From the NCBI GenBank assembly GCA_950097015.1, contig CATNEN010000005.1, positions 1,798,001 through 1,862,000 on the forward strand: a stretch of 64,000 nucleotides of DNA, written 5' to 3'. This DNA is from Macrostomum hystrix (taxonomy: Eukaryota; Animalia; Platyhelminthes). Shown one piece after another: positions 5,770-57,400 of the stretch. Both the position numbers and the translations under genes were made by a program. Under the pieces are notes generated by a model. The model saw only the letters and a program-made list of their open reading frames with translations, searched no databases and had not been told where the DNA came from. How positions within the stretch are numbered: the stretch's first letter is position 1; each line of letters opens with the position of its first letter.

Positions 5770-5909
5770 GGGGCCAGATGTGCAGCAAACAGCAGGCGCA
5801 CAGTTAAGTGTCTTTCTAAAGGACACAAATTGTTCCAGTGGAGTCAGGTATCGAACCCCCGACCTTTAAGTCGTGAATCCGACGCTCTAACCACAAGGCT
5901 ACAGCCTCC
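5770..5909 (-). mobile_element. tRNA-derived SINE family 1, internally deleted copy
   Basis: Minus strand: A-box-like TAGCCTTGTGG, B-box GGTTCGATACC, then CACTGGAACAATTTGTGTCC...GACACTTAAC shared with the copies at 28820 and 29285; tail GCTGCACATCTGGCCC. Confidence 0.8.
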
Positions 5910-6201
5910 ATCTACTGCCTATAATATAATTTACTGGTGGACTCTGGTCACTGGTGCAACATTTGGTGACAATAGACCAGCAGAGTCCGACGCTCTAACC
6001 ACAAGGCTACAGCCTCCATCTACTGCCTATAATATAATTTACTGGTGGACTCTGGTCACTGGTGCAACATTTGGTGACAATAGACCAGCAGAATCCGACG
6101 CTCTAACCACAAGGCTACAGCCTCCATCTACTGCCTATAATATAATTTACTGGTGGACTCTGGTCACTGGTGCAACATTTGGTGACAATAGACCAGCAGA
6201 A
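5876..6201. repeat. 108-bp tandem triplication that captures the SINE 5' end
   Basis: TCCGACGCTCTAACC recurs at 5878, 5986 and 6094. Confidence 0.95.
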
Positions 6202-9006: not shown

Positions 9007-12000
9007 ATGCATTTAACACTAGCCTTCGGTAGAAGATTATTAACTGGTAGCTGTAAAAAGTTGCTTGCGGGTCGACCTATTAATGACACTATAACAGCTG
9101 GAACCAATTTCACTCCACGATGCGTTCGTTACTGTACTGGTAGTAATGTTAGTGCCACATCTGCTAGTGCAAAGGTAAGGCTTTATGTATTGTCAATGCA
9201 GCTTTCTATTCTGCCTGTCCGTCAGGCTCCATTCAGCCTATCAGCCTTTTCATGAGGATTTGTTTCAAACTATTCTTCACAACCTTATCAAAAGTTTCGA
9301 ATCCCCTTCGAACTCCCCTTCAGATCCCCTTCGAACTCTCCTTCAGATCCCCTTCGAACTCCCCATCAGATCCCCTTCGAACTCTCCTTCAGATCCCCTT
9401 CGAACTCCCCTTCAGATCCCCTTCGAACTCTCCTTCAGATCCCCTTTGAACTCCCCTTCAGATCCCCTTCGAACTCTCCTTCAGATCCCCTTCGAACTCT
9501 TAATCCCATTCTTCAATCTACCCAGAAACCCAGGCGTCGTGGCTACGTTGTCACCTGCGCTGTTGGAGCTTCAATCAGCGACTTGGGCTCGACCGGGTCC
9601 GCTGTCAACGAATTGCCTCAGCCAGTGCTGAGCTCCGCCGTCTCCGATTTGCAACGAAAATTCAATCGCGACATTGCCACCATGGTCGAATCCGCGGCCA
9701 GACCGGCCCGCCCCGGCCAGCTGCTGTTGCTGCCAGGCGCTCTTGGACGCGACGCCGATGGCTACATTGCCGACCTGTGCGTAGTCGGCGTAGCCGCAGA
9801 TTCCAAATCTGGTGGCTTGGCCGAACGCGTCGCTGCCGGCGCCGAACCGTTGGAGCCCTGGGAGGCGCGTGAGGACCGGCGAACCGCTGTGCGACAGGCT
9901 GTGGCAGCTCTGCGCGATCTGGGCTGTCGGCAGGTGAACTTTACTTAATTAATTAACATAAACTTTCGTAGTTTGTTATCTTTCTCAAGCTGCATTCAGC
10001 ATCTTCCTCAGGCTGCATTCAGCATCTTCCTCAGGCCACATTCAGCATCTTCCTCAGGCCACATTCAGCATCTTCCTCACGCCACATTCAGTATCTTCCT
10101 CAGGCTGCATTCAGCATCTTCCTCAGGCTGCATTCAGCATCTTCCTCAGGCCACATTCAGCATCTTCCTCAGGCCACATTCAGCATCTTCCTCAGGCCAC
10201 ATTCAGCATCTTCCTCAGGCCACATTCAGTATCTTCCTCAGGCTGCATTCAGCATCTTCCTCAGGCCACATTCAGCATCTTCCTCAGGCTGCATTCAGCA
10301 TCTTCCTCAGGCCACATTCAGCATCTTCCTCACGCCACATTCAGCATCTTCCTCAGGCCACATTCAGCATCTTCCTCACGCCACATTCAGTATCTTCCTC
10401 AGGCTGCATTCAGCATCTTCCTCAGGCTGCATTCAGCATCTTCCTCAGGCCACATTCAGCATCTTCCTCAGGCTGCATTCAGCATCTTCCTCAGGCTGCA
10501 TTCAGCATCTTCCTCAGGCCACATTCAGCATCTTCCTCAGGCCACATTCAGCATCTTCCTCAGGCCACATTCAGCATCTTCCTCAGGCTGCATTCAGCAT
10601 CTTCCTCAGGCTGCATTCAGCATCTTCCTCAGGCCACATTCAGCATCTTCCTCAGGCTGCATTCAGCATCTTCCTCAGGCCACATTCAGCATCTTCCTCA
10701 GGCTGCATTCAGCATCTTCCTCAGGCCACATTCAGTATCTTCCTCAGGCTGCATTCAGCATCTTCCTCAGGCTGCATTCAGCATCTTCCTCAGGCTGCAT
10801 TCAGCATCTTCCTCAGGCCACATTCAGTATCTTCCTCAGGCTGCATTCAGCATCTTCCTCAGGCTGCATTCAGCATCTTCCTCAGGCTGCATTCAGCATC
10901 TTCCTCAGGCCACATTCAGCATCTTCCTCAGGCTGCATTCAGCATCTTCCTCAGGCTGCATTCAGCATCTTCCTCAGGCTGCATTCAGCATCTTCCTCAG
11001 GCTGCATTCAGCATCTTCCTCAGGCTGCATTCAGCATCTTCCTCAGGCTGCATTCAGCATCTTCCTCAGGCTGCATTCAGCATCTTCCTCAGGCTGCATT
11101 CAACATCTTCCTCAGGCTGAATTCAGCAGCTCTTGCTTAGCTTTATTTAAATTACTTTTTATTTAAATCGAGTAGTTTCTTCTTTATTCCGAGATGCAAA
11201 CTCTATTTGAACAGAATGATAAATTTAGTATATTGGATTAGCTTTTTGGCCCCCCTTCAAGTCCCTACGTAGAGAATTCCTAGAGTCCTTAAAATACCTT
11301 GCAGTGTTAGTAAACTTTCCTATTCTGTCCAGGTAATGTTGGACACAGGTATGCAGCCTGCGACGTCTGCCTCCATAGGAGCCGAAAATGACGACGTCAC
11401 TGACGTGGCCGAATCTGCCCAGTCTGCCGCCCAGGTCTATCGACGCGCGCCTCCACGACGGCCCCTAGCAACTGACGACGCCGACGCTAACGACAATGCG
11501 CCAACCCTTATTGGCCGTATTCATGGCAACGCCGGCAACTCGGAAGCGTGGGATTACGGCCTTACTCTAGGCTTAGCCGAGGCTCGAGCTCGCGACCTCA
11601 TGGAACGGCCGGCTAATCTGTGCACACCGGAATGGTTCTGCCGACAGGCTGTTGAAGCCGCAGCCGCGCTCGGTCCCGGAGTTCAAGTCGCTGTTCACGA
11701 TGAAAATTGGATTAAGGATAGGAAAATGGGCGGCTTGTTGGCTGTATCCAAGGGATCAAAGGAGCCGCCGAGATTTTTAGTTGCTAAGTGAGATAGTTTT
11801 TGTGAAAATGCAATTGAAATTCTAGCAGAAAAAAATATTTTAATCATATTAGACTACTCGCTCAGTAGAAATATAAGCCTATTACCCTCTTAATATTAAT
11901 AAAGCAAGTAATATGAGTAACGAGGGGATTTTTTCCAACATTAATTTTCTTTCGCTTGAACAAAAGGCAGACAGGCGAGGGTCGATGGCGAAGCGTTAGC

Positions 12001-15000
12001 GCGTTAGCTCTCGCGCCAAGGACCCTATGTTCGATTCCGCGGCGAGGCCGCCGCCGAGAGAAGGCTTGGGGGTTTGTCATGAAATTTACGCTCTTGCTGG
12101 TCAACAGTGAAATGTACACTGCCTGACGGTTAGAAAGTGTCAGGGCAGATGTGCACACATGTGTGAACGTGTGCCTGCGTACGGTGTCTGTGTGTGTGTG
12201 CTCAGGAGTCAGCGAAATGGGCAGAATTGCCTCCTCGCTGGCTGAGTGTCTACTGAAGGGGTCGGCAAACTCCGGCCCGCAGGCCAGATGCGGCCCTCGA
12301 AGCTCCCAAATCCGGCCCGTTGCCCCTTCTGACATCTACAGTGTCCTGTTTCATCTCTCCCGTGTCTAATCTCTCCCGTGTCTTATCTCTCCCGTGTCTT
12401 ATCTCTCCCGTGTCTAATCTCTCCCGTGTCTCATCTCTCCCGTGTCTAATCTCTCCCGTGTCTAATCTCTCCCGTGTCTAATCTCTCCCGTGTCTCATCT
12501 CTCGCGTGTCTCATCTCTCCCGTGTCTAATCTCTCCCGTGTCTCATCTCTCGCGTGTCTCATCTCTCCCGTGTCTAATCTCTCCCGTGTCTTACCTCTCC
12601 CGTGTCTAATCTCTCCCATGTCTCATCTCTCCCATGTCTAATCTCTCCCGTGTCTAATCTCTCCCGTGTCTAATCTCTCCCGTTTCTCATCTCTCGCGTG
12701 TCTCATCTCTCCCGTTTCTCATCTCTCCCGTGTCTCATCTCTCCCGTGTCTCATCTCTCGCGTGTCTCATCTCTCCCGTTTCTCATCTCTCCCGTGTCTC
12801 ATCTCTCCCGTGTCTCATCTCTCCCGTGTCTCATCTCTCCCTTATCTCATATTTATACAGTCAATGCGGCCCGCTGTCGTCTTTTATGTTCTCTCTTTGG
12901 CCCGCCAGCAAATAAGTTTGCCTACCCCTGGTCTAGTGTCACTAAATCATGCGCCATTGCCCGCAGCCCTCCTGCCATTGTTATTATTATTATTATTATT
13001 ATTATAAGGCAGACAGGCATATGAAATTTGAGAACACGGGCTATTGCACCTTCTGAAACGATATTCAATTCGAGATATTCAACGGTTCTGACCGAAGGTC
13101 AGATTTTTTCATTAGAGCTAGTGTATTTCATACATTCCTAAACAAGAATTAGCACTGCGCCTCAGTGCGGCTTTGCCAGGCCTTCAAACTTTATCAGCAC
13201 GTCGCCCGAATGTGCCTGGTTGCTCTTGCTAGCTCTTTTTTTATTAACGCTATAAAAATGAAACTTGCTTGTTACACCCACACCAGATACGACGGACTGA
13301 GCGGCACAGCAGCTACCGACGAGTCCGCAGCAGCCGACGTGTGCCTAATTGGCAAAGGCGTCACCTTTGATTCGGGCGGCATCAGTATCAAACCGTCGGC
13401 TAACATGGCGGATATGCGTGGCGACATGGGCGGCGCTGCGGTAGCTCTGAGCAGTTTCCTAGCCGCCTGTGAGCTCCGACTGCCGCTAAGGCTGGTGCTG
13501 TGTACTCCGCTGTGCGAGAACATGCCAGATGGGGGCGCTGTTAAGCCCGGTGATGTCATTGAACTGGCCGCAGGAAATCTCACCTGCCGAGTAGATAATA
13601 CTGATGCCGAAGGTGAGGCATGGACATCTTGCCTTATTAGCGGGGTTTCTAGTCTAATTAGTGCTGGGGTTTCTAGCCTAATTAGTGCTGGGTTTGTAGC
13701 CTAATTAGTTCTGGGGGTTCTAGCCTAATTAGTGCTGGTTTTCTAGCCTAATTAGTGCTGGGTTTGTAGCCTAATTAGTGCTATGGGTTCTAGCCTAACT
13801 AGTGCTTTGGTTTCTTGCCTAATTAGTGCTGGGTTTTTTGCCTAATTAGTGCTGGGGGTTCTAGCCTAATTAGTGCTGGGTTTGCAGCCTAATTAGTGCT
13901 GGTTTTCTAGCCTAATTAGTGCTGGGTTTGTAGCCTAATTAGTTCTGGGTTTGTAGACTAATTAGTGCTGGGTTTGTAGCCTAATTAGTGCTATGGGTTC
14001 TAGCCTAACTAGTGCTTTGGTTTCTTGCCTAATTAGTGCTGGGTTTTTTGCCTAATTAGTGCTGGGGGTTCTAGCCTAATTAGTGCTGGGTTTGCAGCCT
14101 AATTAGTGCTGGGGTTTCTAGCCTAATTAGTGCTGGGGGTTCTAGCCTAATTAGTGCTGGGTTTATAGCCTAATTAGTGCTGGGTTTATAGCCTAATTAG
14201 TGCTGGGTTTGTAGCCTAATTAGTGCTGGGGTTTCTAGCCTAATTAGTGCTGGGGGTTCTAGCCTAATTAGTGCTGGGGTTCTAGCCTAATTAGTGCTGG
14301 GGTTTCTAGCCTAATTAGTGCTGGGTTTGTAGCCTAATTAGTGCTGGGGTTTCTAGCCTAATTAGTGCTGGGGTTTCTAGCCTAATTAGTGCTGGGTTTC
14401 TAGCCTAATTAGTGCTGGGTTTCTAGCCTAATTAGTGCTGGGGTTTCTAGCCTAATTAGTGCTGGGTTTGTAGCCTAATTAGTGCTGGGGGTTCTAGCCT
14501 AATTAGTGCTGGGTTTGTAGCCTAATTAGTCCTGGTGTTTCTAGTCTAACTTTGTTATCAGTAGTTTGGCAAGCTTCTAGTCTAGCTATCCTGAATTTGA
14601 ATCCATTCTATCGCATTGTTAAGGCCGTTTAATCCTAGCGGACGCGCTTCACTACGCCACAAACAATGGGCAGCACCCGCGCCTAATCCTGGATTTAGCC
14701 ACCCTCACCGGAGCCATCGCCATCGCATTGGGCGGACAGCGAGCCGGATTGTTTGCCAATCGAGCAGCCAGATTGGCCAGATATGAGCGACGACTGTTGG
14801 ATAGCGGCTTCGTCAGGGGCGACCCGTTGCATCCAATGCCAACCGATAGGCGCTACAGGGCGGCTGTGCAGGATAAATCTGGTACGTGGGATTAGCGCGT
14901 CATTGATCGCAACCAATCTGAGATTGGAGGCACTGTGGCATCGTCCCGAATCCCCAGATGCGCCTTTTCAAATCCCCAGATGCGCCTTTTCAAATCCCCA

Positions 15001-30316: not shown

Positions 30317-30396
30317 ATTGGTGACACTGGACCCGAGGCAGCGATGAGGCAATTCTGCCCATTCCGCTGACTCCTGAGCACACACCACGCAGATAC
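30317..30396 (-). mobile_element. SINE2 3' fragment (empty site for the MITE)
   Basis: Minus strand TGTGTGCTCAGGAGTCAGCGGAATGGGCAGAATTGCCTC...GTCCAGTG-TCACCAAT carries a single copy of the 8-bp target at 30325-30332. Confidence 0.75.
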
Positions 30397-30451
30397 TGTA
30401 CGCAGGAACACGCTCACGCAGGTGATAAATCAAACTTCGGCCTATCCATAG

Positions 30452-33400
30452 ATGCAAAGGTCAGTGGTTCGAGTCGGCGGTCTTGACGGCGCCGGAGGCA
30501 GGCGAGGCCGTTCTCAAGCGGTGTTTGAAGCTCCGCCAAGCACCGGCAATCGGCTGGTGTCGGCGCTGCGTCGAGTGTCTCTGGCGCCCAGCGGCATCCT
30601 GAACCAAATTGACGAACTGAGAAAAAAGTCCAGGACACTGTTTCACCTCAGGCACAACATGGCCGACATCGAGGAGCTGCTGGCTTGTCGGGGTGGCACT
30701 CGCCAGCGACCAGTCAGCATCTATCAGCTTGCCAGGGTTACACGGTTCTCGGCTCAGGAGCTCAGGTCACTTTACCGCGGATTCAAGGCTGAATGCCCAG
30801 ATGGTGAGTGACCAGGTGTGATCTAGGGTGAGCAGGTGTGATCTAGAGTGAGCAGGTGTGATCTAGAGTGAGCAGGTGTGATCTAGGGTGAGCAGGTGTG
30901 ATCTAGAGCTTGAGCAGGTGTGATCTAGAGCTTGAGCAGGTGTGATCTAGAGTGAGCAGGTGTGATCTAGAGTGAGCAGGTGTGATCTAGAGTGAGCAGG
31001 TGTGATCTAGAGCTTGAGCAGGTGTGATCTAGGGTGAGCAGGTGTGATCTAGGGTGAGCAGGTGTGATCTAGAGTGAGCAGGTGTGATCTAGAGTGAGCA
31101 GGTGTGATCTAGGGTGAGCAGGTGTGATCTAGAGCTTGAGCAGGTGTGATCTAGAGCTTGAGCAGGTGTGATCTAGAGTGACCAGGTGTGATCTAGAGTG
31201 AGCAGGTGTGATCTAGAGTGACCAGGTGTGATCTAGTGTGAGCAGGTGTGATCTAGAGTGACCAGGTGTGATCTAGAGTGAGCAGGTGTAATCTAGAGTG
31301 ACCAGGTGTGATCTAGGGTGAGCAGGTGTGATCTAGAGTGAGCAGGTGTGATCTAGAGTGAGCAGGTGTGATCTAGAGTGAGCAGGTGTAATCTAGAGTG
31401 ACCAGGTGTAATCTAGAGTGACCAGGTGTGATCTAGAGTGAGCAGGTGTGATCTAGAGTGAGCAGGTGTAATCTAGAGTGACCAGGTGTGATCTAGAGTG
31501 AGCAGGTGTGATCTAGAGTGAGCAGGTGTGATCTAGAGTGACCAGGTGTGATCTAGAGTGACCAGGTGTGATCTAGAGTGAGCAGGTGTGATCTAGAGTG
31601 AGCAGGTGTGATCTAGTGTGAGCAGGTGTGATCTAGTGTGAGCAGGTGTGATCTAGAGTGAGCAGGTGTGATCTAGAGTGACCAGGTGTGATCTAGAGTG
31701 AGCAGGTGTGATCTAGTGTGAGCAGGTGTGATCTAGTGTGAGCAGGTGTGATCTAGAGTGAGCAGGTGTGATCTAGTCTGAGCAGGTGTGATCTAGAGTG
31801 AGCAGGTGTGATCTAGAGTGAGCAGGTGTAATCTAGAGTGACCAGGTGTGATCTAGGGTGAGCAGGTGTGATCTAGAGTGAGCAGGTGTGATCTAGAGTG
31901 ACCAGGTGTAATCTAGAGTGACCAGGTGTGATCTAGGGTGAGCAGGTGTGATCTAGTGTGAGCAGGTGTGATCTAGGTTGAGCAGGTGTGATCTAGGGTG
32001 AGCAGGTGTGATCTAGAGTGACTGGGTCTGATCTTACACCAACTTAAGTAAAAAACCGCTGAACACTGGAGTTATTATCAATATGGACACTCCAAATGAG
32101 AGAATAATAAATTGAAATTGGCTGTTGTTGTCATGTTAATGTGGTCAATAAATTGGAGCACCGCTTTCGAGTGTGTCGCTGTTTGAAAGCATAATAAAAC
32201 ACGATTAAAATCGCATTTGAGATTTGAAATACGAGTCTGCTCAACACGGGATGCGAACCTTATCTTGCTTAGATGGTATAGATGGAAGGAATATGGACGT
32301 TTTAATCGCTAATTTTTTTGTGATTCCAAAAATGATGGATTTTTTTAAGATATACAAGCTAAAAGAGCTAAAAGTCTATTTAGATTCCGCAATCAGTGTT
32401 TTTAGTTTTTTGTTCTCTAAGGGCCAATCCTATTTCCCTTTTTTGCTTTCCTTAAGAAAGCTAGTTTCTTGGTGTACCAATTAGATTTTCGCAGACTAAA
32501 AGCAATTACCTTGAAAGCAATGTAGTGTAATTTTAATAAGCGTTAGTTAAATATTTTTCAGCCTAAAGTCTAATTAAATTAAGCAGTTTTGTACCTTTTA
32601 AAATAAAAAAGTCCTGTTTCTTTAGATAGAAAAAATTCAAAGCTTTAAACTTAAGAATGCAATTAAATATTAGTAAGAAAATAAATTCTATGTAATCCGA
32701 GTGAAATCTGAGTGAAATCCAAGTGAAATCTGAGTGAAATCCGAGTGAAATCTGAGTGAAATCCGAGTGAAATCCGAGGGAAATCTGAGTGAAATCTGAG
32801 TGAAATCCAAGTGAAATCTGAGTGAAATCTGAGTGAAATCTGAGTGAAATCCGAGGGAAATCTGAGTGAAATCTGAGTGAAATCTGAGTGAAATCCAAGT
32901 GAAATCTGAGTGAAATCCTAGTGAAATCCGAGTGAAATCTGAGTGAAATCCTAGTGAAATCCGAGTGAAATCCTAGTGAAATCCGAGTGAAATCTGAGTG
33001 ACATATGAGTGAAATCTGAGTGAAATCCGAGTGACATCCGAGTGAAATCTGAGTGAAATCCGAGTGACATCCGAGTGAAATCTGAGTGACATCTGAGTGA
33101 AATCTGAGTGAAATCCGAACGAAATCCCAATGAAATGCGAGTGAAATCCGAGTGAAATCTGAGTGAAATCTGAGTGAAATCTGAGTGACATCCGAGTGAA
33201 ATCTGAGTGACATCCGAGTGAAATCGGAGTGAAATCCTAGTTAAACACAGGTGAAATCCGAGTGAAATCCGAGTGAAATCCGAGTGAAATCCGAGTGAAA
33301 TCCTAGTGAAACCCAGGTGAAATCCGAGTGAAATCCTGGTGAATTTGGAGTGAAGGCGAAAAACTACGTCCAGCAAAATTTTCTGTCAAAGGCTGGCTGG

Positions 33401-47236: not shown

Positions 47237-47312
47237 CGTTTGCTTTGATCAGCTGACTCACTGGAACACTATCAGGAACGAAATTTTGATTGACACCTCT
47301 AAAACTTGACGC

Positions 47313-47525
47313 AGCCGCGGAGAGAAGGCTTGGGGGCTTGCACAGCGAGAGTGTACACTGCCTGACGATGAGAAAGTCAGGGCAGATGTACACACCTGTG
47401 TGAGTGTGTGCTCAGGAGTCAGCGAAATGGGCAGAGATCGCCTCTCGCAGGCTTTACTGTCACCAAATGAAGTGCTGTACGCTCGTACTGCCCCTCAGCC
47501 CTCCTACAAATGAACGAAAAAAAAC
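47313..47525 (+). mobile_element. 5'-truncated SINE2 copy lacking the MITE
   Basis: GAGAGAAGGCTTGGGGG...GTACACTGCCTGAC...TGTGTGCTCAGGAGTCAGCGAAATGGGCAG...TGTCACCAAAT...CAGCCCTCCT matches both sides of the MITE insertion in the 11977 copy; A-rich tail. Confidence 0.8.
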
Positions 47526-48111: not shown

Positions 48112-48397
48112 ATATGAGACATCAGAGAGATGAGACATGAGAGAGATGAGACAGGGGAGAGATGAGACCCGGGAGATAAGAGACAGGGGAGAGATGAGAC
48201 AGGGGAGAGATGAGACATGAGAAAGATGAGACAGGGAGATATGAGACGGAGTGATAAGACGGGAGAGATGAGACACGAGAGATAAGAGACAGGGAGAGAT
48301 GAGACATGAGAAAGATGAGACAGGGAGATACGAGATGGAGAGATAAGACGGGAGAGATGAGGCACGGGAGACAAGAGACGGGAGATATGAGAGACGG
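48112..48397. repeat. Minisatellite, ~16-bp unit, ~18 copies, just after the TM7SF3 stop
   Basis: Plus strand GAGAC(A/C)GGGGAGAGAT; the minus strand reads TCTCATCTCTCCCCTG, the same family as the 12353 array. Confidence 0.9.
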
Positions 48398-48457
48398 AGA
48401 GGTGACTCCCTCTCAATTGAAGCACCGCTGCGATCAGTACAATCTTCGGCAACAGAG

Positions 48458-51400
48458 TTACCGTTGTCCACGCAGCAATGGCGTGCGTTCGTCGTTAACA
48501 ATGGCCGGATCTTGAAAAATGGCGTCACTAGCACCGCCGCCAAATGAAAAATACAACACGCGCCGCTGCCTCTCACGTCTCTGATCAGCATCGCGATTGA
48601 GACTCGAAGCCAAAGAAGAAACTAATGGAGGCGGTGGCAATGTCACATGTTCGATTCCTCTACGACTCGGATCAAGACCGTAGTGCCGATTGAAGCGGTA
48701 CTGCAGAAGGCAGCAGGCAGCGGTCAGTGCCGGCCACGCCACTAGCGCGACTAGGTCTGGAAGATCCGACCGATTGAGACAGTTTTGCTAACTTTAGAGT
48801 TCACATTTTTGAGCAAAAAATAAAATCACTAAATTAAGTATCACGCTCTGGGAACCAAAGCGAAATCTGTCCTGGGAATCTGTCCTAGGAATCGGAGTAG
48901 GGAATCTTAGGGAATCTGTCCTAGGAATCGGAGTAGGGAATCTTCTAGGGAATCTGTCCTAGGAATCGGAGTAGGGAATCTTAGGGAATCTGTCCTGGGA
49001 ATCTGTCCTAGGAATCGGAGTAGGGAATCTTAGGGAATCTGTCCTAGGAATCGGAGTAGGGAATCTTAGGGAATCTGTCCTAGGAATCGGAGTAGGGAAT
49101 CTTCTAGGGAATCTGTCCTAGGAATCGGAGTAGGGAATCTTCTAGGGAATCTGTCCTAGGAATCGGAGTAGGGAATCTTAGGGAATCTGTCCTAGGAATC
49201 GGAGTAGGGAATCTTAGGGAATCTGTCCTAGGAATCGGAGTAGGGAATCTTCTAGGGAATCTGTCCTAGGAATCGGAGTAGGGAATCTTAGGGAATCTGT
49301 CCTAGGAATCGGAGTAGGGAATCTTAGGGAATCTGTCCTAGGAATCGGAGTAGGGAATCTTCTAGGGAATCTGTCCTAGGAATCGGAGTAGGGAATCTTA
49401 GGGAATCTGTCCTAGGAATCGGAGTAGGGAATCTTAGGGAATCTGTCCTAGGAATCGGAGTAGGGAATCTTCTAGGGAATCTGTCCTAGGAATCGGAGTA
49501 GGGAATCTTAGGGAATCTGTCCTAGGAATCGGAGTAGGGAATCTTAGGGAATCTGTCCTAGGAATCCGAGTAGGGAATCTTAGGGAATCTGTCCTAGGAA
49601 TCGGAGTAGGGAATCTTAGGGAATCTGTCCTAGGAATCGGAGTAGGGAATCTTAGGGAATCTGTCCTAGGAATCGGAGTAGGGAATCTTAGGGAATCTGT
49701 CCTAGGAATCCGAGTAGGGAATCTTAGGGAATCTGTCCTAGGAATCGGAGTAGGGAATCTTAGGGAATCTGTCCTAGGAATCGGAGTGGGGAATCTTAGG
49801 GAATCTGTCCTAGGAATCGGAGTGGGGAATCTGTCCTAGGCATAGAAGTGGGATTTTAGGTAAAGAGCTATCATAAAAAATGAGACGTACTTACCAGCAA
49901 CTCTGCGAAATTCGTAGTACAACAGAGCGCTGTTGTAATTCTCTGTAGCCGTTCTACGAAACAAATCCATAAAAACGTATGGAAAGCTGGTCGGTATTGG
50001 CAAGTTGGCAATAAGCCCGCTTGCTAGCAGGAACGTACCAACAAATGATAGAGAAAAGATTGCGCCCTGCAAGAAACCAATTAAGGGACACATAAGTAGC
50101 ATAATACACTGAAGTAGCTGAGGGAAACACCATGAAGTAGCTGAGGGAAACACCATGAAGTAGCTGAGGGAAACACCATGAAGTAGCTGAGGGAAACACC
50201 ATGAAGTAGCTGAGGGAAACACCATGAAGTAGCTGAGGGAAACACCATGAAGTAGCTGAGGGAAACACCATGAAGTAGCTGAGGGAAACACCATGAAGTA
50301 GCTGAGGGAAACACCATGAAGTAGCTGAGGGAAACACCATGAAGTAGCTGAGGGAAACACCATGAAGCAACTGAGGGAAACACCATGAAGCAACTGAGGG
50401 AAACACCATGAAGCAACTGAGGGAAACACCATGAAGCAACTGAGGGAAACACCATGAAGCAACTGAGGGAAACACCATGAAGCAACTGAGGGAAACACCA
50501 TGAAGTAGCTGAGGGAAACACCATGAAGCAACTGAGGGAAACACCATGAAGCAACTGAGGGAAACACCATGAAGTAGCTGAGGGAAACACCATGAAGCAA
50601 CTGAGGGAAACACCATGAAGCAACTGAGGGAAACACCATGAAGCAACTGAGGGAAACACCATGAAGTAGCTGAGGGAAACACCATGAAGTAGCTGAGGGA
50701 AACACCATGAAGTAGCTGAGGGAAACACCATGAAGCAACTGAGGGAAACACCATGAAGTAGCTGAGGGAAACACCATGAAGCAACTGAGGGAAACACCAT
50801 GAAGCAACTGAGGGAAACACCATGAAGCAACTGAGGGAAACACCATGAAGTAGCTGAGGGAAACACCATGAAGCAACTGAGGGAAACACCATGAAGCAAC
50901 TGAGGGAAACACCATGAAGTAACTGAGGGAAACACCATGAAGTAGCTGAGGGAAACACCATGAAGTAGCTGAGGGAAACACCATGAAGCAACTGAGGGAA
51001 ACACCATGAAGCAACTGAGGGAAACACCATGAAGCAACTGAGGGAAACACCATGAAGCAACTGAGGGAAACACCATGAAGTAGCTGAGGGAAACACCATG
51101 AAGCAACTGAGGGAAACACCATGAAGTAGCTGAGGGAAACACCATGAAGTAACTGAGGGAAACACCATGAAGTAGCTGAGGGAAACACCATGAAGCAACT
51201 GAGGGAAACACCATGAAGTAGCTGAGGGAAACACCATGAAGTAGCTGAGGGAAACACCATGAAGTAGCTGAGGGAAACACCATGAAGTAGCTGAGGGAAA
51301 CACCATGAAGCAACTGAGGGAAACACCATGAAGTAACTGAGGGAAACACCATGAAGTAGCTGAGGGAAACACCATGAAGTAGCTGAGGGAAACACCATGA

Positions 51401-54400
51401 AGCAACTGAGGGAAACACCATGAAGTAGCTGAGGGAAACACCATGAAGTAGCTGAGGGAAACACCATGAAGCAACTGAGGGCAACATTATGAAGCAACTG
51501 AGGGAAACACCATGAAGTAACTGAGGGAAACACCATGAAGCAACTGAGGGAAACACCATGAAGTAACTGAGGGAAACACCATGAAGCAACTGAGGGAAAC
51601 ACCATGAAGTAACTGAGGGAAACACCATGAAGCAACTGAGGGAAACACCATGAAGCAACTGAGGGAAACACCATGAAGCAACTGAGGGAAACACCATGAA
51701 GCAACTGAGGGAAAAACCATGAAGCAACTGAGGGAAACTCCATGAAGCAACTGAGGGAAACACCATGAAGTAACTGAGGGAAACACCATGAAGCAACTGA
51801 GGGAAACACCATGAAGCAACTGAGGGAAACACCATGAAGTAACTGAGGGAAACACCATGAAGCAACTGAGTGAAACACATGAAGCAACTGAGTGAAACAC
51901 CATGAAGCAACTGAGGTAAACACCATGAAGTAGCTGAGGGAAACACCATGAAGTAGCTGAGGGAAACACCATGAAGCAACTGAGGGAAACACCATGAAGT
52001 AGCTGAGGGAAACACCATGAAGTAGCTGAGGGAAACACCATGAAGTAGCTGAGGGAAACACCATGAAGTAGCTGAGGGAAACACCATGAAGCAACTGAGG
52101 GAAACACCATGAAGTAACTGAGGGAAACACCATGAAGTAGCTGAGGGAAACACCATGAAGTAGCTGAGGGAAACACCATGAAGCAACTGAGGGAAACACC
52201 ATGAAGTAGCTGAGGGAAACACCATGAAGTAGCTGAGGGAAACACCATGAAGCAACTGAGGGCAACATTATGAAGCAACTGAGGGAAACACCATGAAGTA
52301 ACTGAGGGAAACACCATGAAGCAACTGAGGGAAACACCATGAAGTAACTGAGGGAAACACCATGAAGCAACTGAGGGAAACACCATGAAGTAACTGAGGG
52401 AAACACCATGAAGCAACTGAGGTAAACACCATGAAGCAACTGAGGGAAACACCATGAAGTAACTGAGGGAAACACCATGAAGCAACTGAGGGAAACACCA
52501 TGAAGCAACTGAGGGAAACACCATGAAGCAACTGAGGGAAACACCATGAAGTAACTGAGGGAAACACCATGAAGCAACTGAGGGAAACTCCATGAAGCAA
52601 CTGAGGGAAACACCATGAAGCAACTGAGGGAAACTCCATGAAGCAACTGAGGGAAACACCATGAAGCAACTGAGGGCAACATTATGAAGCAACTGAGGGA
52701 AACACCATGAAGTAACTGAGGGAAACACCATGAAGCAACTGAGGGAAACACCATGAAGTAACTGAGGGAAACACCATGAAGCAACTGAGGGAAACACCAT
52801 GAAGTAACTGAGGGAAACACCATGAAGCAACTGAGGTAAACACCATGAAGCAACTGAGGGAAACACCATGAAGTAACTGAGGGAAACACCATGAAGCAAC
52901 TGAGGGAAACACCATGAAGCAACTGAGGGAAACACCATGAAGCAACTGAGGGAAACACCATGAAGTAACTGAGGGAAACACCATGAAGCAACTGAGGTAA
53001 ACACCATGAAGCAACTGAGGGAAACACCATGAAGTAACTGAGGGAAACACCATGAAGCAACTGAGGGAAACACCATGAAGCAACTGAGGGAAACACCATG
53101 AAGCAACTGAGGGAAACACCATGAAGTAACTGAGGGAAACACTATGAAGCAACTGAGGGAAACACCATGAAGCAACTGAGGGAAACTCCATGAAGCAACT
53201 GAGGGAAACACCATGAAGCAACTGAGGGAAACTCCATGAAGCAACTGAGTGAAACACATGAAGCAACTGAGTGAAACACCATGAAGCAACTGAGGTAAAC
53301 ACCACAAAGTGTTCAATCGATTCAGGGAAGGATTCAGGGAAGGATTCAGGAAGCACTATACAGCAAATGATAAAATCCCTACCGAGCTTTGAAAGAGCAA
53401 CAGCAGCAGCAGGCAAAGTATCAGGGCGACGCCAAGCGCACCGAGAAACGCGGCCTCGTGTTCAGTTAGCCACCAAAGTCTGCCAAACGGTGTGACAAAC
53501 AATATACAAACCAGAGCATAGCAGCATGGCAGGTGCAGTATTAGGTAGGCCAAAGCGTTGCAACGCTTGCGTAGCCACACAGCCAGTACTAGGCCGCCAA
53601 CTATGCAGCCAGGTGCTAAACAGCCTAATAGTAGGCTGACGAATAGCGGCAGTTGAGTGGCAGTGTGGCGCAGCGCCACTGGTAGAGTAGCCAACGAGCC
53701 AACAACGAAACCGCTTAGGAACACACCTAAATATTTAATCACAGCGAGGTAATCATTATTGTCGATAAAACATAGTCTACAGCATATTCAAAATGAATAA
53801 CTAAATACTTACTGGCGGCAAAGAAACGAAATCCAACGGTACAAAGAAATAATCCGATACAGACGGCCAGAATTGTTACAATGCGACACTCGACACCTGT
53901 TTAAAGTTATTTAGATAAAATACTTTTAAATACGTTAAACTAAGTTTTAGCCTTTCATGGAGGCTGTGGTCTAATGCTTCGAGCTTTGAAATATTAATCC
54001 AGTTATCTCGAGTTCAAATTATTGCGCAGAGCACACATAATTTCATACAGTTCTCAAAGTCGTACGAGTGTATTACAAAGCCAAAGTTCAATATGATACT
54101 GTTAAGACCAATCAAAACATATAAAAACACATTCAAATGCTTTTTGTTTTCGCGTGGTCCCAAAGTTTTGTTGAGCCTATGTTTCGAGTTCGTGAATTTT
54201 TCTTTATTTTTTTCTGCTGGTTGCTGGCTGCTGCTTGAGTAAAATCTTTTTTCCTTTGTGTTTTTTCTCAAAGAATATTTTTGCCCAAAACTGCTCTTCT
54301 TCTGTTGCCACATGAACTAAAATAAAAGGTTTTTGCGTTGTGTTGCTTTTTTCTGCTGATTTCTGCTGCGCTTTGCTTTTTCTGAAATAATTCCTTTAAT

Positions 54401-57400
54401 TACGAAGTAGAAGGCGTCGAAATTGTGAAGGGATCGCCTTGCTCTATCAGCATTACTCGGTAGTAGCACTAGTAGGAAGTTAGGAATTTAACTGAAATGA
54501 TATTTTAAAAGTCAGTAAAAACTGTAGCAAATCTGACGCGTCACAGGGAAGTAGCTGATTGAAAAGAATGGTAGCTAATCTGACGCGTCACAAGGTAGTA
54601 GCTGATTGAAAAGAATGGTAGCAAATCTGACGCGTCACAGGGAAGTAGCTGATTGAAAAGAATGGTAGCAAATCTGACGCGTCACAAGGTAGTAGCTGAT
54701 TGAAAAGGATGGTAGCAAATCTGACGCGTCACAAGGTAGTAGCTGATTGAAAAGAATGGTAGCAAATCTGACGCGTCACAAGGTAGTAGCTGATTGAAAA
54801 GAATGGTAGCAAATCTGACGCGTCACAAGGTAGTAGCTGATTGAAAAGAATGGTAGAAAATCTGACGCGTCACAAGGTAGTAGCTGATTGAGAAGGACGG
54901 TAGAAAATCTGACGCGTCACAAGGTAGTAGCTGATTGAAAAGAATGGTAGAAAATCTGACGCGTCACAAGGTAGTAGCTGATTGAGAAGGACGGTAGAAA
55001 ATCTGACGCGTCACAAGGTAGTAGCTGATTGAAAAGAATGGTAGCAAATCTGACGCGTCACAAGGTAGTAGCTGATTGAAAAGAATGGTAGCAAATCTGA
55101 CGCGTCACAAGGTAGTAGCTGATTGAAAAGAATGGTAGCAAATCTGACGCGTCACAAGGTAGTAGCTGATTGAAAAGAATGGTAGCAAATCTGACGCGTC
55201 ACAGGGAAGTAGCTGATTGAAAAGAATGGTAGCTAATCTGACGCGTCACAAGGTAGTAGCTGATTGAAAAGAATGGTAGCAAATCTGACGCGTCACAAGG
55301 TAGTAGCTGATTGAGAAGGACGGTAGAAAATCTGACGCGTCACAGGGAAGTAGCTGATTGAAAAGAATGGTAGCAAATCTGACGCGTCACAAGGTAGTAG
55401 CTGATTGAAAAGGATGGTAGCAAATCTGACGCGTCACAAGGTAGTAGCTGATTGAAAAGAATGGTAGCAAATCTGACGCGTCACAAGGTAGTAGCTGATT
55501 GAAAAGAATGGTAGCAAATCTGACGCGTCACAAGGTAGTAGCTGATTGAAAAGAATGGTAGAAAATCTGACGCGTCACAAGGTAGTAGCTGATTGAGAAG
55601 GACGGTAGAAAATCTGACGCGTCACAAGGTAGTAGCTGATTGAAAAGAATGGTAGAAAATCTGACGCGTCACAAGGTAGTAGCTGATTGAGAAGGACGGT
55701 AGAAAATCTGACGCGTCACAAGGTAGTAGCTGATTGAAAAGAATGGTAGCAAATCTGACGCGTCACAAGGTAGTAGCTGATTGAAAAGAATGGTAGCAAA
55801 TCTGACGCGTCACAAGGTAGTAGCTGATTGAAAAGAATGGTAGCAAATCTGACGCGTCACAGGGAAGTAGCTGATTGAAAAGAATGGTAGCAAATCTGAC
55901 GCGTCACAAGGTAGTAGCTGATTGAAAAGAATGGTAGCAAATCTGACGCGTCACAAGGTAGTAGCTGATTGAAAAGAATGGTAGCAAATCTGACGCGTCA
56001 CAAGGTAGTAGCTGATTGAAAAGAATGGTAGCTAATCTGACGCGTCACAAGGTAGTAGCTGATTGAAATGGACGGTAGCAAATCTGACGCGTCACAAGGT
56101 AGTAGCTGATTGAGAAGGACGGTAGAAAATCTGACGCGTCACAGGGAAGTAGCTGATTGAAAAGAATGGTAGCAAATCTGACGCGTCACAAGGTAGTAGC
56201 TGATTGAAAAGGATGGTAGCAAATCTGGCGCGTCACAAGGTAGTAGCTGATTGAAAAGAATGGTAGCAAATCTGACGCGTCACAAGTAGTAGCTGATTGA
56301 AAAGAATGGTAGAAAATCTGACGCGTCACAAGGTAGTAGCTGATTGAAAAGAATGGTAGCAAATCTGACGCGTCACAGGGTAGTAGCTGATTGAAAAGAA
56401 TGGTAGCAAATCTGACGCGTCACAAGGTAGTAGCTGATTGAAAAGAATGGTAGCAAATCTGACGCGTCACAAGGTAGTAGCTGATTGAAAAGAATGGTAG
56501 CAAATCTGACGCGTCACAAGGTAGTAGCTGATTGAAAAGAATGGTAGCAAATCTGACGCGTCACAAGGTAGTAGCTGATTGAAAAGAATGGTAGCAAATC
56601 TGACGCGTCACAGGGCAGTAGCTGATTGAAAAGAATGGTAGAAAATCTGACGCGTCACAAGGTAGTAGCTGATTGAAAAGAATGGTAGCAAATCTGACGC
56701 GTCACAAGGTAGTAGCTGATTGAAAAGAATGGTAGAAAATCTGACGCGTCACAAGGTAGTAGCTGATTGAAAAGAATGGTAGCAAATCTGACGCGTCACA
56801 GGGTAGTAGCTGATTGAAAAGAATGGTAGCAAATCTGACGCGTCACAAGTAGTAGCTGATTGAAAAGAATGGTAGAAAATCTGACGCGTCACAAGGTAGT
56901 AGCTGATTGAAAAGAATGGTAGCAAATCTGACGCGTCACAAGGTAGTAGCTGATTGAAAAGAATGGTAGCAAATCTGACGCGTCACAAGGTAGTAGCTGA
57001 TTGAAAAGAATGGTAGAAAATCTGACGCGTCACAAGGTAGTAGCTGATTGAAAAGAATGGTAGCAAATCTGACGCGTCACAGGGAAGTAGCTGATTGAAA
57101 AGGATGGTAGCAAATCTGACGCGTCACAAGGTAGTAGCTAATTGAAAAGAATGGTAGCAAATCTGACGCGTCACAGGGTAGTAGCTGATTGAAAAGAATG
57201 GTAGCAAATCTGACGCGTCACAGGGTAGTAGCTGATTGAAAAGAATGGTAGCAAAACTGACGCGTCACAGGGTAGTAGCTGATTGAAAATAATGGTAGCA
57301 AATCTGACGCGTCACGAGGTAGCTGATTGAGTTGGCTGCTGGTTGAGAAACATATTTTATCCTTTGTGTTTTTGTCTAAGAATATTTTAGCCCAATATTG

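Follow-up and report, generated by a model that had tools for sequence, protein, structure and literature searches.

The analyzed window, a 64,000-nt stretch of Macrostomum hystrix DNA, contains the gene for a flatworm aminopeptidase (Peptidase_M17), one intron of which houses a set of nested repeats. This intron (donor GTGAG, acceptor CAG) is delimited by the joint 11787 to 13287 in the spliced contigs of three runs from two studies (X2, X3, and X8), bearing out the predicted intron setting, and the exons beside it match PF00883 at profile positions 3–66 and 73–169. A SINE and one copy of its duplication take up 1042 of the 1499 bp. The original prediction had read the locus as a SINE split by a Charlie-type hAT MITE that is itself largely filled by an expanded minisatellite, and every feature of this nest was recovered in its predicted place.

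11788–13286, forward strand: host intron of the Peptidase_M17 gene, 1499 bp, GT..AG
11964–11976, forward strand: left 13-bp SINE target-site duplication, exact match to 13006–13018
11977–13005, forward strand: SINE, 1029 bp including the MITE
11977–12255, forward strand: SINE 5′ part, with a tRNA-like head (~11977–12051), followed by the body as far as the MITE target
12248–12255, forward strand: left 8-bp MITE duplication, GTCTACTG, inside the SINE 5′ part
12256–12930, forward strand: MITE, 675 bp, termini matching at 14/16 positions
12256–12346, forward strand: MITE left arm, 91 bp, with the 16-nt terminal inverted repeat and subterminal GGCCCG motifs
12347–12850, forward strand: minisatellite, 504 bp, 31.5 units of the 16-bp TGTCTCATCTCTCCCG
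12851–12930, forward strand: MITE right arm, 80 bp, with the inverted terminal repeat at its end
12931–12938, forward strand: right 8-bp MITE duplication, GTCTAGTG, the same as the SINE consensus
12939–13005, forward strand: 3′ part of the SINE, including the (ATT)n tail (12977–13005)
13006–13018, forward strand: right 13-bp SINE target-site duplication, exact match to 11964–11976
30336–30424, reverse strand: partial SINE copy, MITE target empty, reading GTCCAGTG
47308–47453, forward strand: partial SINE copy, MITE target empty and uninterrupted

The SINE is bounded on both sides by AAGGCAGACAGGC, which occurs exactly twice in the window, confirming the proposed 1029-bp retroposon with an exact 13-bp duplication; the predicted simple-repeat tail is also present and is given here as (ATT)n. 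This copy is 90% identical to the family consensus and carries deletions of 18 bp and 11 bp. A genome search with its 5′ part yielded 3067 or more first-look candidates, and the MITE target was found unoccupied in 5,566 copies across the genome. The consensus head contains A/B-box-like motifs (TGGCAGAGCGG and GTTCGATTCC), and ARAGORN run at 85% of its default threshold called a tRNA-Glu(CTC) at positions 2–77 of the consensus only. At default thresholds, neither ARAGORN nor Rfam called a tRNA in the window SINE or in 9–12 better-preserved copies. A tRNA origin of the “tRNA head” of the original prediction is thus weakly supported. The family resembles tRNA-derived SINEs with simple-repeat tails in its ~75-nt head with such motifs, its (ATT)n 3′ tail, its variable duplications (10–15 bp at other copies), and its thousands of copies; it differs from them in the divergence of its head, which neither ARAGORN nor Rfam recognizes at default thresholds.

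The MITE has the 16-bp terminal inverted repeats (14/16) and 8-bp duplication expected of it, the two flanks, GTCTACTG and GTCTAGTG, agreeing at seven of eight positions. Two mutations are private to the window copy, namely an A as the first base of the left terminus and a C in the left duplication: the MITE consensus begins with C, and the SINE consensus has GTCTAGTG at the target. The consensus termini, CAGGGGTCGGCAAACT and CAGGGGTAGGCAAACT (the latter being the reverse complement of the right end), start with CAG and match at 15/16 positions. Across the genome, the 25-nt left terminus was counted 864 times, against zero in a reversed control, and the 8-bp duplications are perfect in 28 of 35 full copies examined (with one mismatch in five others); the observed structure is therefore not due to chance. 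Over 90 nt of the left arm, the best 40 genomic matches are 99% identical, the right arm is 95–99% identical in other copies, and the window arms depart from the consensus at 3 of 171 positions. GGCCCG occurs five times in the 171 bp of both arms; its density in the window is 0.19 per kb. The copies are 227–1544 bp long, with arms of 171 bp together and no coding capacity. Most of the 35 copies were picked as best matches to the left arm, which skews age estimates drawn from them to young copies. Two loci considered as a longer form of the element (L009 and L029) proved to be a duplicated ~1 kb segment with a truncated MITE and were discarded.

Minisatellites are difficult to assemble, and the contigs of the runs are short across repeats, so we considered whether the nest or the array lengths could be artefacts of a repeat-rich long-read assembly. 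Against this, the nest has base-perfect junctions, duplications, and arms, which recur at dozens of independent loci, and the published assembly has high base accuracy (PMC10468722), which makes such an error very unlikely.

Across copies, the 8-bp target duplications have the consensus nTCTAGAn, with the central TA (positions 4–5) in 33 of 33 copies. The CAGGGG-type termini and the nTCTAGAn preference would also be shared with mammalian Charlie/MER-type hAT MITEs, such as the MER58 type named in the original prediction, a putative likeness that would lie within the first dozen bases. The central-TA target consensus is that of the Buster family (TcBuster, PMC3499496), and it is also given for the Mar MITE (PMC3517528). 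The target duplications of the M. hystrix MITE fit the Buster/Charlie branch of the hAT superfamily rather than the Ac type. This Buster mark is the one feature on which the predicted “Charlie-type” label stands; no matching transposase element was found among three multi-copy loci. The PF05699 profile gave 64 genome matches, and the MITE termini were absent within 5 kb of the three multi-copy transposase ORFs (L071–L073; 601, 716, and 816 aa). A full-text literature search for the terminus strings returned only unrelated papers.

A close comparison is with Mar, a hAT MITE from Drosophila willistoni that belongs to the Buster family. Mar (PMC3517528) shares the 8-bp duplications with central TA, and its 11-nt terminus (CAGGGGTAGGC), CAG(G/A)GGTAGGC, is that of the right terminus of the M. 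hystrix MITE. Both are young families with mostly intact duplications. In the passages of that source consulted here, an internal minisatellite goes unmentioned, whereas the M. hystrix MITE carries an array, and Mar has a transposase-bearing relative, whereas none was found for the M. hystrix MITE among the three transposase loci checked.

The SINE was in place before the MITE. Beyond the 5,566 empty sites and the uninterrupted target of the SINE consensus, the SINE is ~10% diverged from its consensus, against 3/171 positions for the MITE arms, and both partial SINE copies of the window are MITE-free. These two copies, predicted at 30317 and 47313, do span an intact target, although they proved to be only fragments (30336–30424 and 47308–47453). 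GTCTAGTG is a near-ideal target for the MITE. At ~16 loci a MITE sits in this one SINE site, with both orientations in similar numbers and in diverged SINE hosts. These are independent insertions.

The repeated filling of one SINE site, together with the presence of the nest at two further sampled loci (L005 and L019), could also be explained if a SINE transcript containing the MITE had been retroposed as one unit, a possibility raised with the original prediction. Yet neither orientation predominates, and the SINEs at L005 and L019 have ~86% identity with the consensus, against 95–99% for the MITE arms. The GTCTAGTG that the SINE has only once is duplicated separately around every MITE, the genomic SINE copies, even the best, are at most 85% identical to the window copy, and none was seen with common junctions, orientation, and array map together with new outer duplications of the SINE type. 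Movement as a composite is thus very unlikely, and independent hits replace it.

The predicted ~500 bp of array within the 675-bp MITE was found as 504 bp, for which Tandem Repeats Finder gave a period of 16, 31.5 copies, and 92% matches. An array lies between near-identical arms in all 35 full MITE copies, ranging from 3.5 to 86 units or more (lengths taken from a single long-read assembly), and its borders are constant across copies, which agree in the variant of the first unit and in the half unit at the end, TATCTCAT. Since 35/35 copies carry the array, it is a cargo of the family, as the original prediction had proposed; copies lacking the 16-mer would have spoken for a later local event, and none was found. 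L002 and L019 agree exactly in 10 units at the start of the array and 6 at its end but differ by 14 internal units, and 5 + 1 units are common within each of the pairs L061/L062 and L068/L069. With boundary units common and the interior different in L002/L019, we conclude that arrays are carried along by the element and afterwards altered where they have landed. The notion of minisatellite “seeds” carried into introns therefore holds as to cargo but understates it, as at least 16 units, not a seed only, are common between loci.

A local origin of the array, with a MITE free of repeats inserting first and the 16-mer emerging and growing only at this locus, is very unlikely: ~25 other arrays of the window lack hAT ends and some unit variants are near-private to the window copy, but the identical unit, first unit, and terminal half unit in 35/35 copies, the 3.5 units still present in the shortest copies, and the 16 units exactly common to L002 and L019 all contradict it.

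We consider it highly probable that the locus was built in layers by a SINE, then an array-bearing hAT MITE, then change of the array in place. A tRNA-related SINE of ~360 bp would have retroposed into the Peptidase_M17 intron, generating the 13-bp duplication. Much later, a non-autonomous hAT MITE, putatively of Buster/Charlie type and presumably moved by a hAT transposase supplied in trans, would have been cut and pasted into GTCTAGTG within the SINE, generating the 8-bp duplication. It would have arrived with the family's internal 16-bp minisatellite already aboard, and the array would then have been altered in place through duplication of unit blocks, its length probably changing by slippage or unequal exchange. 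In the window array, near-private unit variants occur in repeated blocks. Array length and arm divergence gave a Spearman rho of 0.22 (p = 0.21) in this biased sample, which does not support longer arrays in more decayed copies.

The window contains ~25 tandem arrays, of which one is MITE-borne: a search for inverted termini with an 8-bp duplication around 25 window arrays found only the known MITE. A related array at 48114–48405 has no significant similarity to either MITE arm (z below 1). With a single MITE-borne array among ~25, carriage by transposons does not account for most of the intron minisatellites here; the predicted route by which mobile elements bring minisatellites into introns is true for this array and covers 1/25 of the arrays in the window.

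MITE-borne tandem repeats are known from Xmix/Xstir of Xenopus laevis, miDNA4 of X. tropicalis, pearl/CvA of bivalves, and the microsatellite MITEs of Lepidoptera (PMC9659126). The M. hystrix family is like these in consisting of short, non-autonomous DNA transposons whose conserved arms enclose an array, in the variation of array copy number by insertion, and in the spread of the repeat by the transposon. It differs in its 16-bp unit and hAT affiliation, miDNA4 being a Tc1-mariner element (PMC9659126), and in its host, a macrostomid flatworm whose repeats have been undescribed so far (PMC10468722). The nest cleanly illustrates a process that is already known and does not represent an element of a new kind. 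What it adds is a junction-level record of two previously undescribed M. hystrix families, a SINE (at least 5,500 copies) and a hAT MITE (~860 copies), and of a transposon that distributes a hypervariable minisatellite into genes. The MITE family offers hundreds of candidate variable-number markers, and its copies form a natural replicate series on array growth in a minisatellite-crowded genome.

A tentative reading, which we regard as possible but somewhat doubtful, goes further and takes the ~860 near-identical MITEs as replicate seeds of one minisatellite in a genome unusually prone to array growth. It is based on arms that differ by at most 3% and arrays of 3.5 to 86 or more units with locus-specific higher-order blocks. 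If this is true, array turnover would be far faster than point mutation, and the family could serve to quantify the forces behind the extreme load of intron minisatellites in Macrostomum.

The sense strand of the array is 79% pyrimidine, contains zero AG and 28 CTNAT motifs, and is followed within 18 nt by TACAG. More speculatively, this pyrimidine-rich, AG-free tract with its CTNAT motifs and TACAG suggests that the MITE could act as a mobile cryptic 3′ splice site.

All the features that the original prediction listed for the nested element in the Peptidase_M17 intron are present:

11964-11976 and 13006-13018: SINE target-site duplication AAGGCAGACAGGC, an exact 13-mer with only these two occurrences in the window
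12256-12930: MITE of 675 bp, its 16-nt inverted termini matching at 14 of 16 positions
12347-12850: array of 16-bp units inside the MITE (Tandem Repeats Finder: 31.5 copies, 92% matches)

The AAGGCAGACAGGC pair encloses a 1029-bp element whose 3′ end is an (ATT)n tail, and GTCTACTG and GTCTAGTG border the MITE within it.

The window covers 1798001-1862000 of contig 5 in the Macrostomum hystrix assembly (220,453,370 bases, 42 contigs). In this assembly the left arm of the MITE (91 bp) gave 1135 first-look candidates, and the 40 that were scored were each 99% identical across 90 nt. The left terminus (25 nt, at most two mismatches) occurred 864 times in the genome and never in the reversed control. 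Arm and duplication statistics were taken from 35 full MITE copies in sampled loci, whose arms differ from their consensus by at most 3% (mean 0.9%; 3 of 171 positions in the window MITE).

The 16-mer behaves as cargo of the MITE, as had been proposed: the array is present in 35 of the 35 full copies, and none without it was found among them. Its length ranged from 13.5 to 86 units in 24 copies sampled via the left arm, and a dedicated pattern search recovered 10 copies with no more than 130 bp between the arms, the shortest having 3.5 units. The array nearly always starts with one particular variant unit and ends, in 30 of 35, with the half unit TATCTCAT; since these boundaries are conserved, length changes occur in the interior. 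Arrays are inherited between loci, as seen at two loci on different contigs (L002 and L019) in which the first 10 units are exactly identical, as are the last 6, L019 having 14 additional internal units in a two-unit alternation. They are also modified in place. Many copies have private higher-order blocks, and the variant unit TGTCTCATCTCTCGCG of the window array, found in only one other sampled copy, is organised there in repeated three- and four-unit blocks. An increase in array length with arm decay was not supported by the sampled copies (rho 0.22, p 0.21).

The 8-bp duplications are perfect in 28 of the 35 full copies, with TA at positions 4-5 in 33 of 33 and the consensus nTCTAGAn. The motif GGCCCG occurs five times in the 171 bp of the arms, compared to 0.19 per kb in the window, and we infer that these copies may resemble subterminal transposase-binding repeats. 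Together, duplication length, TA-centred target, termini and GGCCCG motifs point to a probable hAT affiliation. Charlie elements, the type originally proposed, were reportedly placed within the Buster branch by Arensburger et al. 2011. The nTCTAGAn, central-TA type is the Buster-family pattern reported for TcBuster (PMC3499496). The report on the Drosophila MITE Mar gives the same target pattern and an 11-nt terminus identical to the right terminus of the M. hystrix MITE (PMC3517528). An autonomous partner was not found among three multi-copy hAT reading frames, which lack the MITE termini.

The 5′ part of the SINE returned at least 3067 genomic candidates. A consensus of ~360 bp, built from 29 copies with their own 10-15-bp duplications, has a ~75-nt head with A/B-box-like motifs and an (ATT)n tail. 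The predicted tRNA nature of this head fared less well: ARAGORN and Rfam recognised no tRNA in the SINE at default settings, but ARAGORN at 85% of threshold called tRNA-Glu(CTC) on the consensus, which tentatively suggests a tRNA origin. Because the consensus includes GGGTCTAGTGTCAC, the MITE target was a single ancestral GTCTAGTG, and the C of the left MITE duplication in the window is a later mutation. This target is uninterrupted in 5,566 genomic SINE copies and likewise in both partial copies in the window (30336-30424, minus strand; 47308-47453, plus strand). Identity to the consensus is 90% for the window SINE, which has 18-bp and 11-bp deletions, and 95-99% for other copies. This divergence and the empty targets elsewhere indicate that the SINE clearly predates its MITE guest, the order originally proposed.

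The possibility that SINE and MITE moved as a composite did not hold. About eight MITEs adjoin GGTCTAGTG by their left end and about eight by their right end, so both orientations occur; the nest at a second locus, L005, is oriented as in the window and that at L019 is opposite. The host SINEs at these two loci are ~86% identical to the consensus, versus 95-99% for the MITE arms, and at L067 the MITE lies at another position of a SINE. No other copy more than 85% identical to the window SINE was found in the genomic SINE search. The nests recur because a near-ideal target is available in thousands of SINE copies. Nested insertions are routine.

The nest is a well-resolved case of a known process: carriage and dispersal of tandem repeats by MITEs is established for Xmix/Xstir, miDNA4, bivalve pearl/CvA and lepidopteran microsatellite MITEs (reviewed in PMC9659126). 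Repeat content was left uncharacterised in the M. hystrix genome paper (PMC10468722). The MITE family is chiefly of value as a set of replicates, ~860 arrays within a genome prone to minisatellites.

In three runs of two studies, contigs connect 11787 directly with 13287, leaving out 1499 bp bounded by GT..AG, and show no depth over unique intron parts; these runs therefore behave as RNA, the record annotation being silent. Searched singly, the flanking exons match successive portions of the catalytic domain of Peptidase_M17. The nest occupies 1042 of the 1499 intron bp and the array 504 bp. On the gene sense strand, the array is 79% pyrimidine, lacks AG and holds 28 CTAAT/CTCAT motifs. A TACAG at most 18 nt past the array (12347-12868 in all) resembles a strong 3′ splice site; its use was seen in no contig. 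In the same intron, contig depth at 13108-13241 is ~500-960, compared to ~30 in neighbouring exons in the same runs, indicating a further multi-copy repeat.

The window holds ~25 minisatellite arrays, including:

9978-11128: minisatellite array
13643-14549: minisatellite array
30806-32021: minisatellite array
50110-53304: minisatellite array
54524-57322: minisatellite array

The window arrays are unrelated, with periods of 11-47 bp and lengths of 0.2-3.2 kb, span 7214-57322 and often lie just a few hundred bases apart. Among them, hAT-type termini with an 8-bp duplication were found only around the MITE array. The proposed MITE route into introns stands for this array, which was carried into its intron, but only one of the ~25 is MITE-borne; carriage is real, yet not the main source of arrays in the window. 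A related-looking, degenerate array lies at 48114-48405; it has a higher-order period of 89 bp and 15-16-bp units, GAGAGATGAGACAGG, which correspond to the core of the MITE unit in reverse complement. No MITE arms are detectable there, so the array is a relic or else arose independently.

At 5875-6201, a 108-bp unit stands in three tandem copies (99% identical); its start resembles the reverse complement of a tRNA-like segment, and the repeat may be SINE-related. SINE copies lie within or adjoining minisatellite arrays at four further loci (L032, L036, L044 and L054), and at L036 one repeat unit occurs on both sides of the SINE, which therefore inserted into an existing array. Finally, ~1.06 kb is duplicated at 98.5% identity between L074 1-8801 (contig 5, near 1.687 Mb) and L075 1-8801 (contig 1, near 14.61 Mb). 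The segment comprises a MITE left arm, ~20 units and then unrelated CAG-rich sequence, and is a truncated MITE copied within a larger piece.
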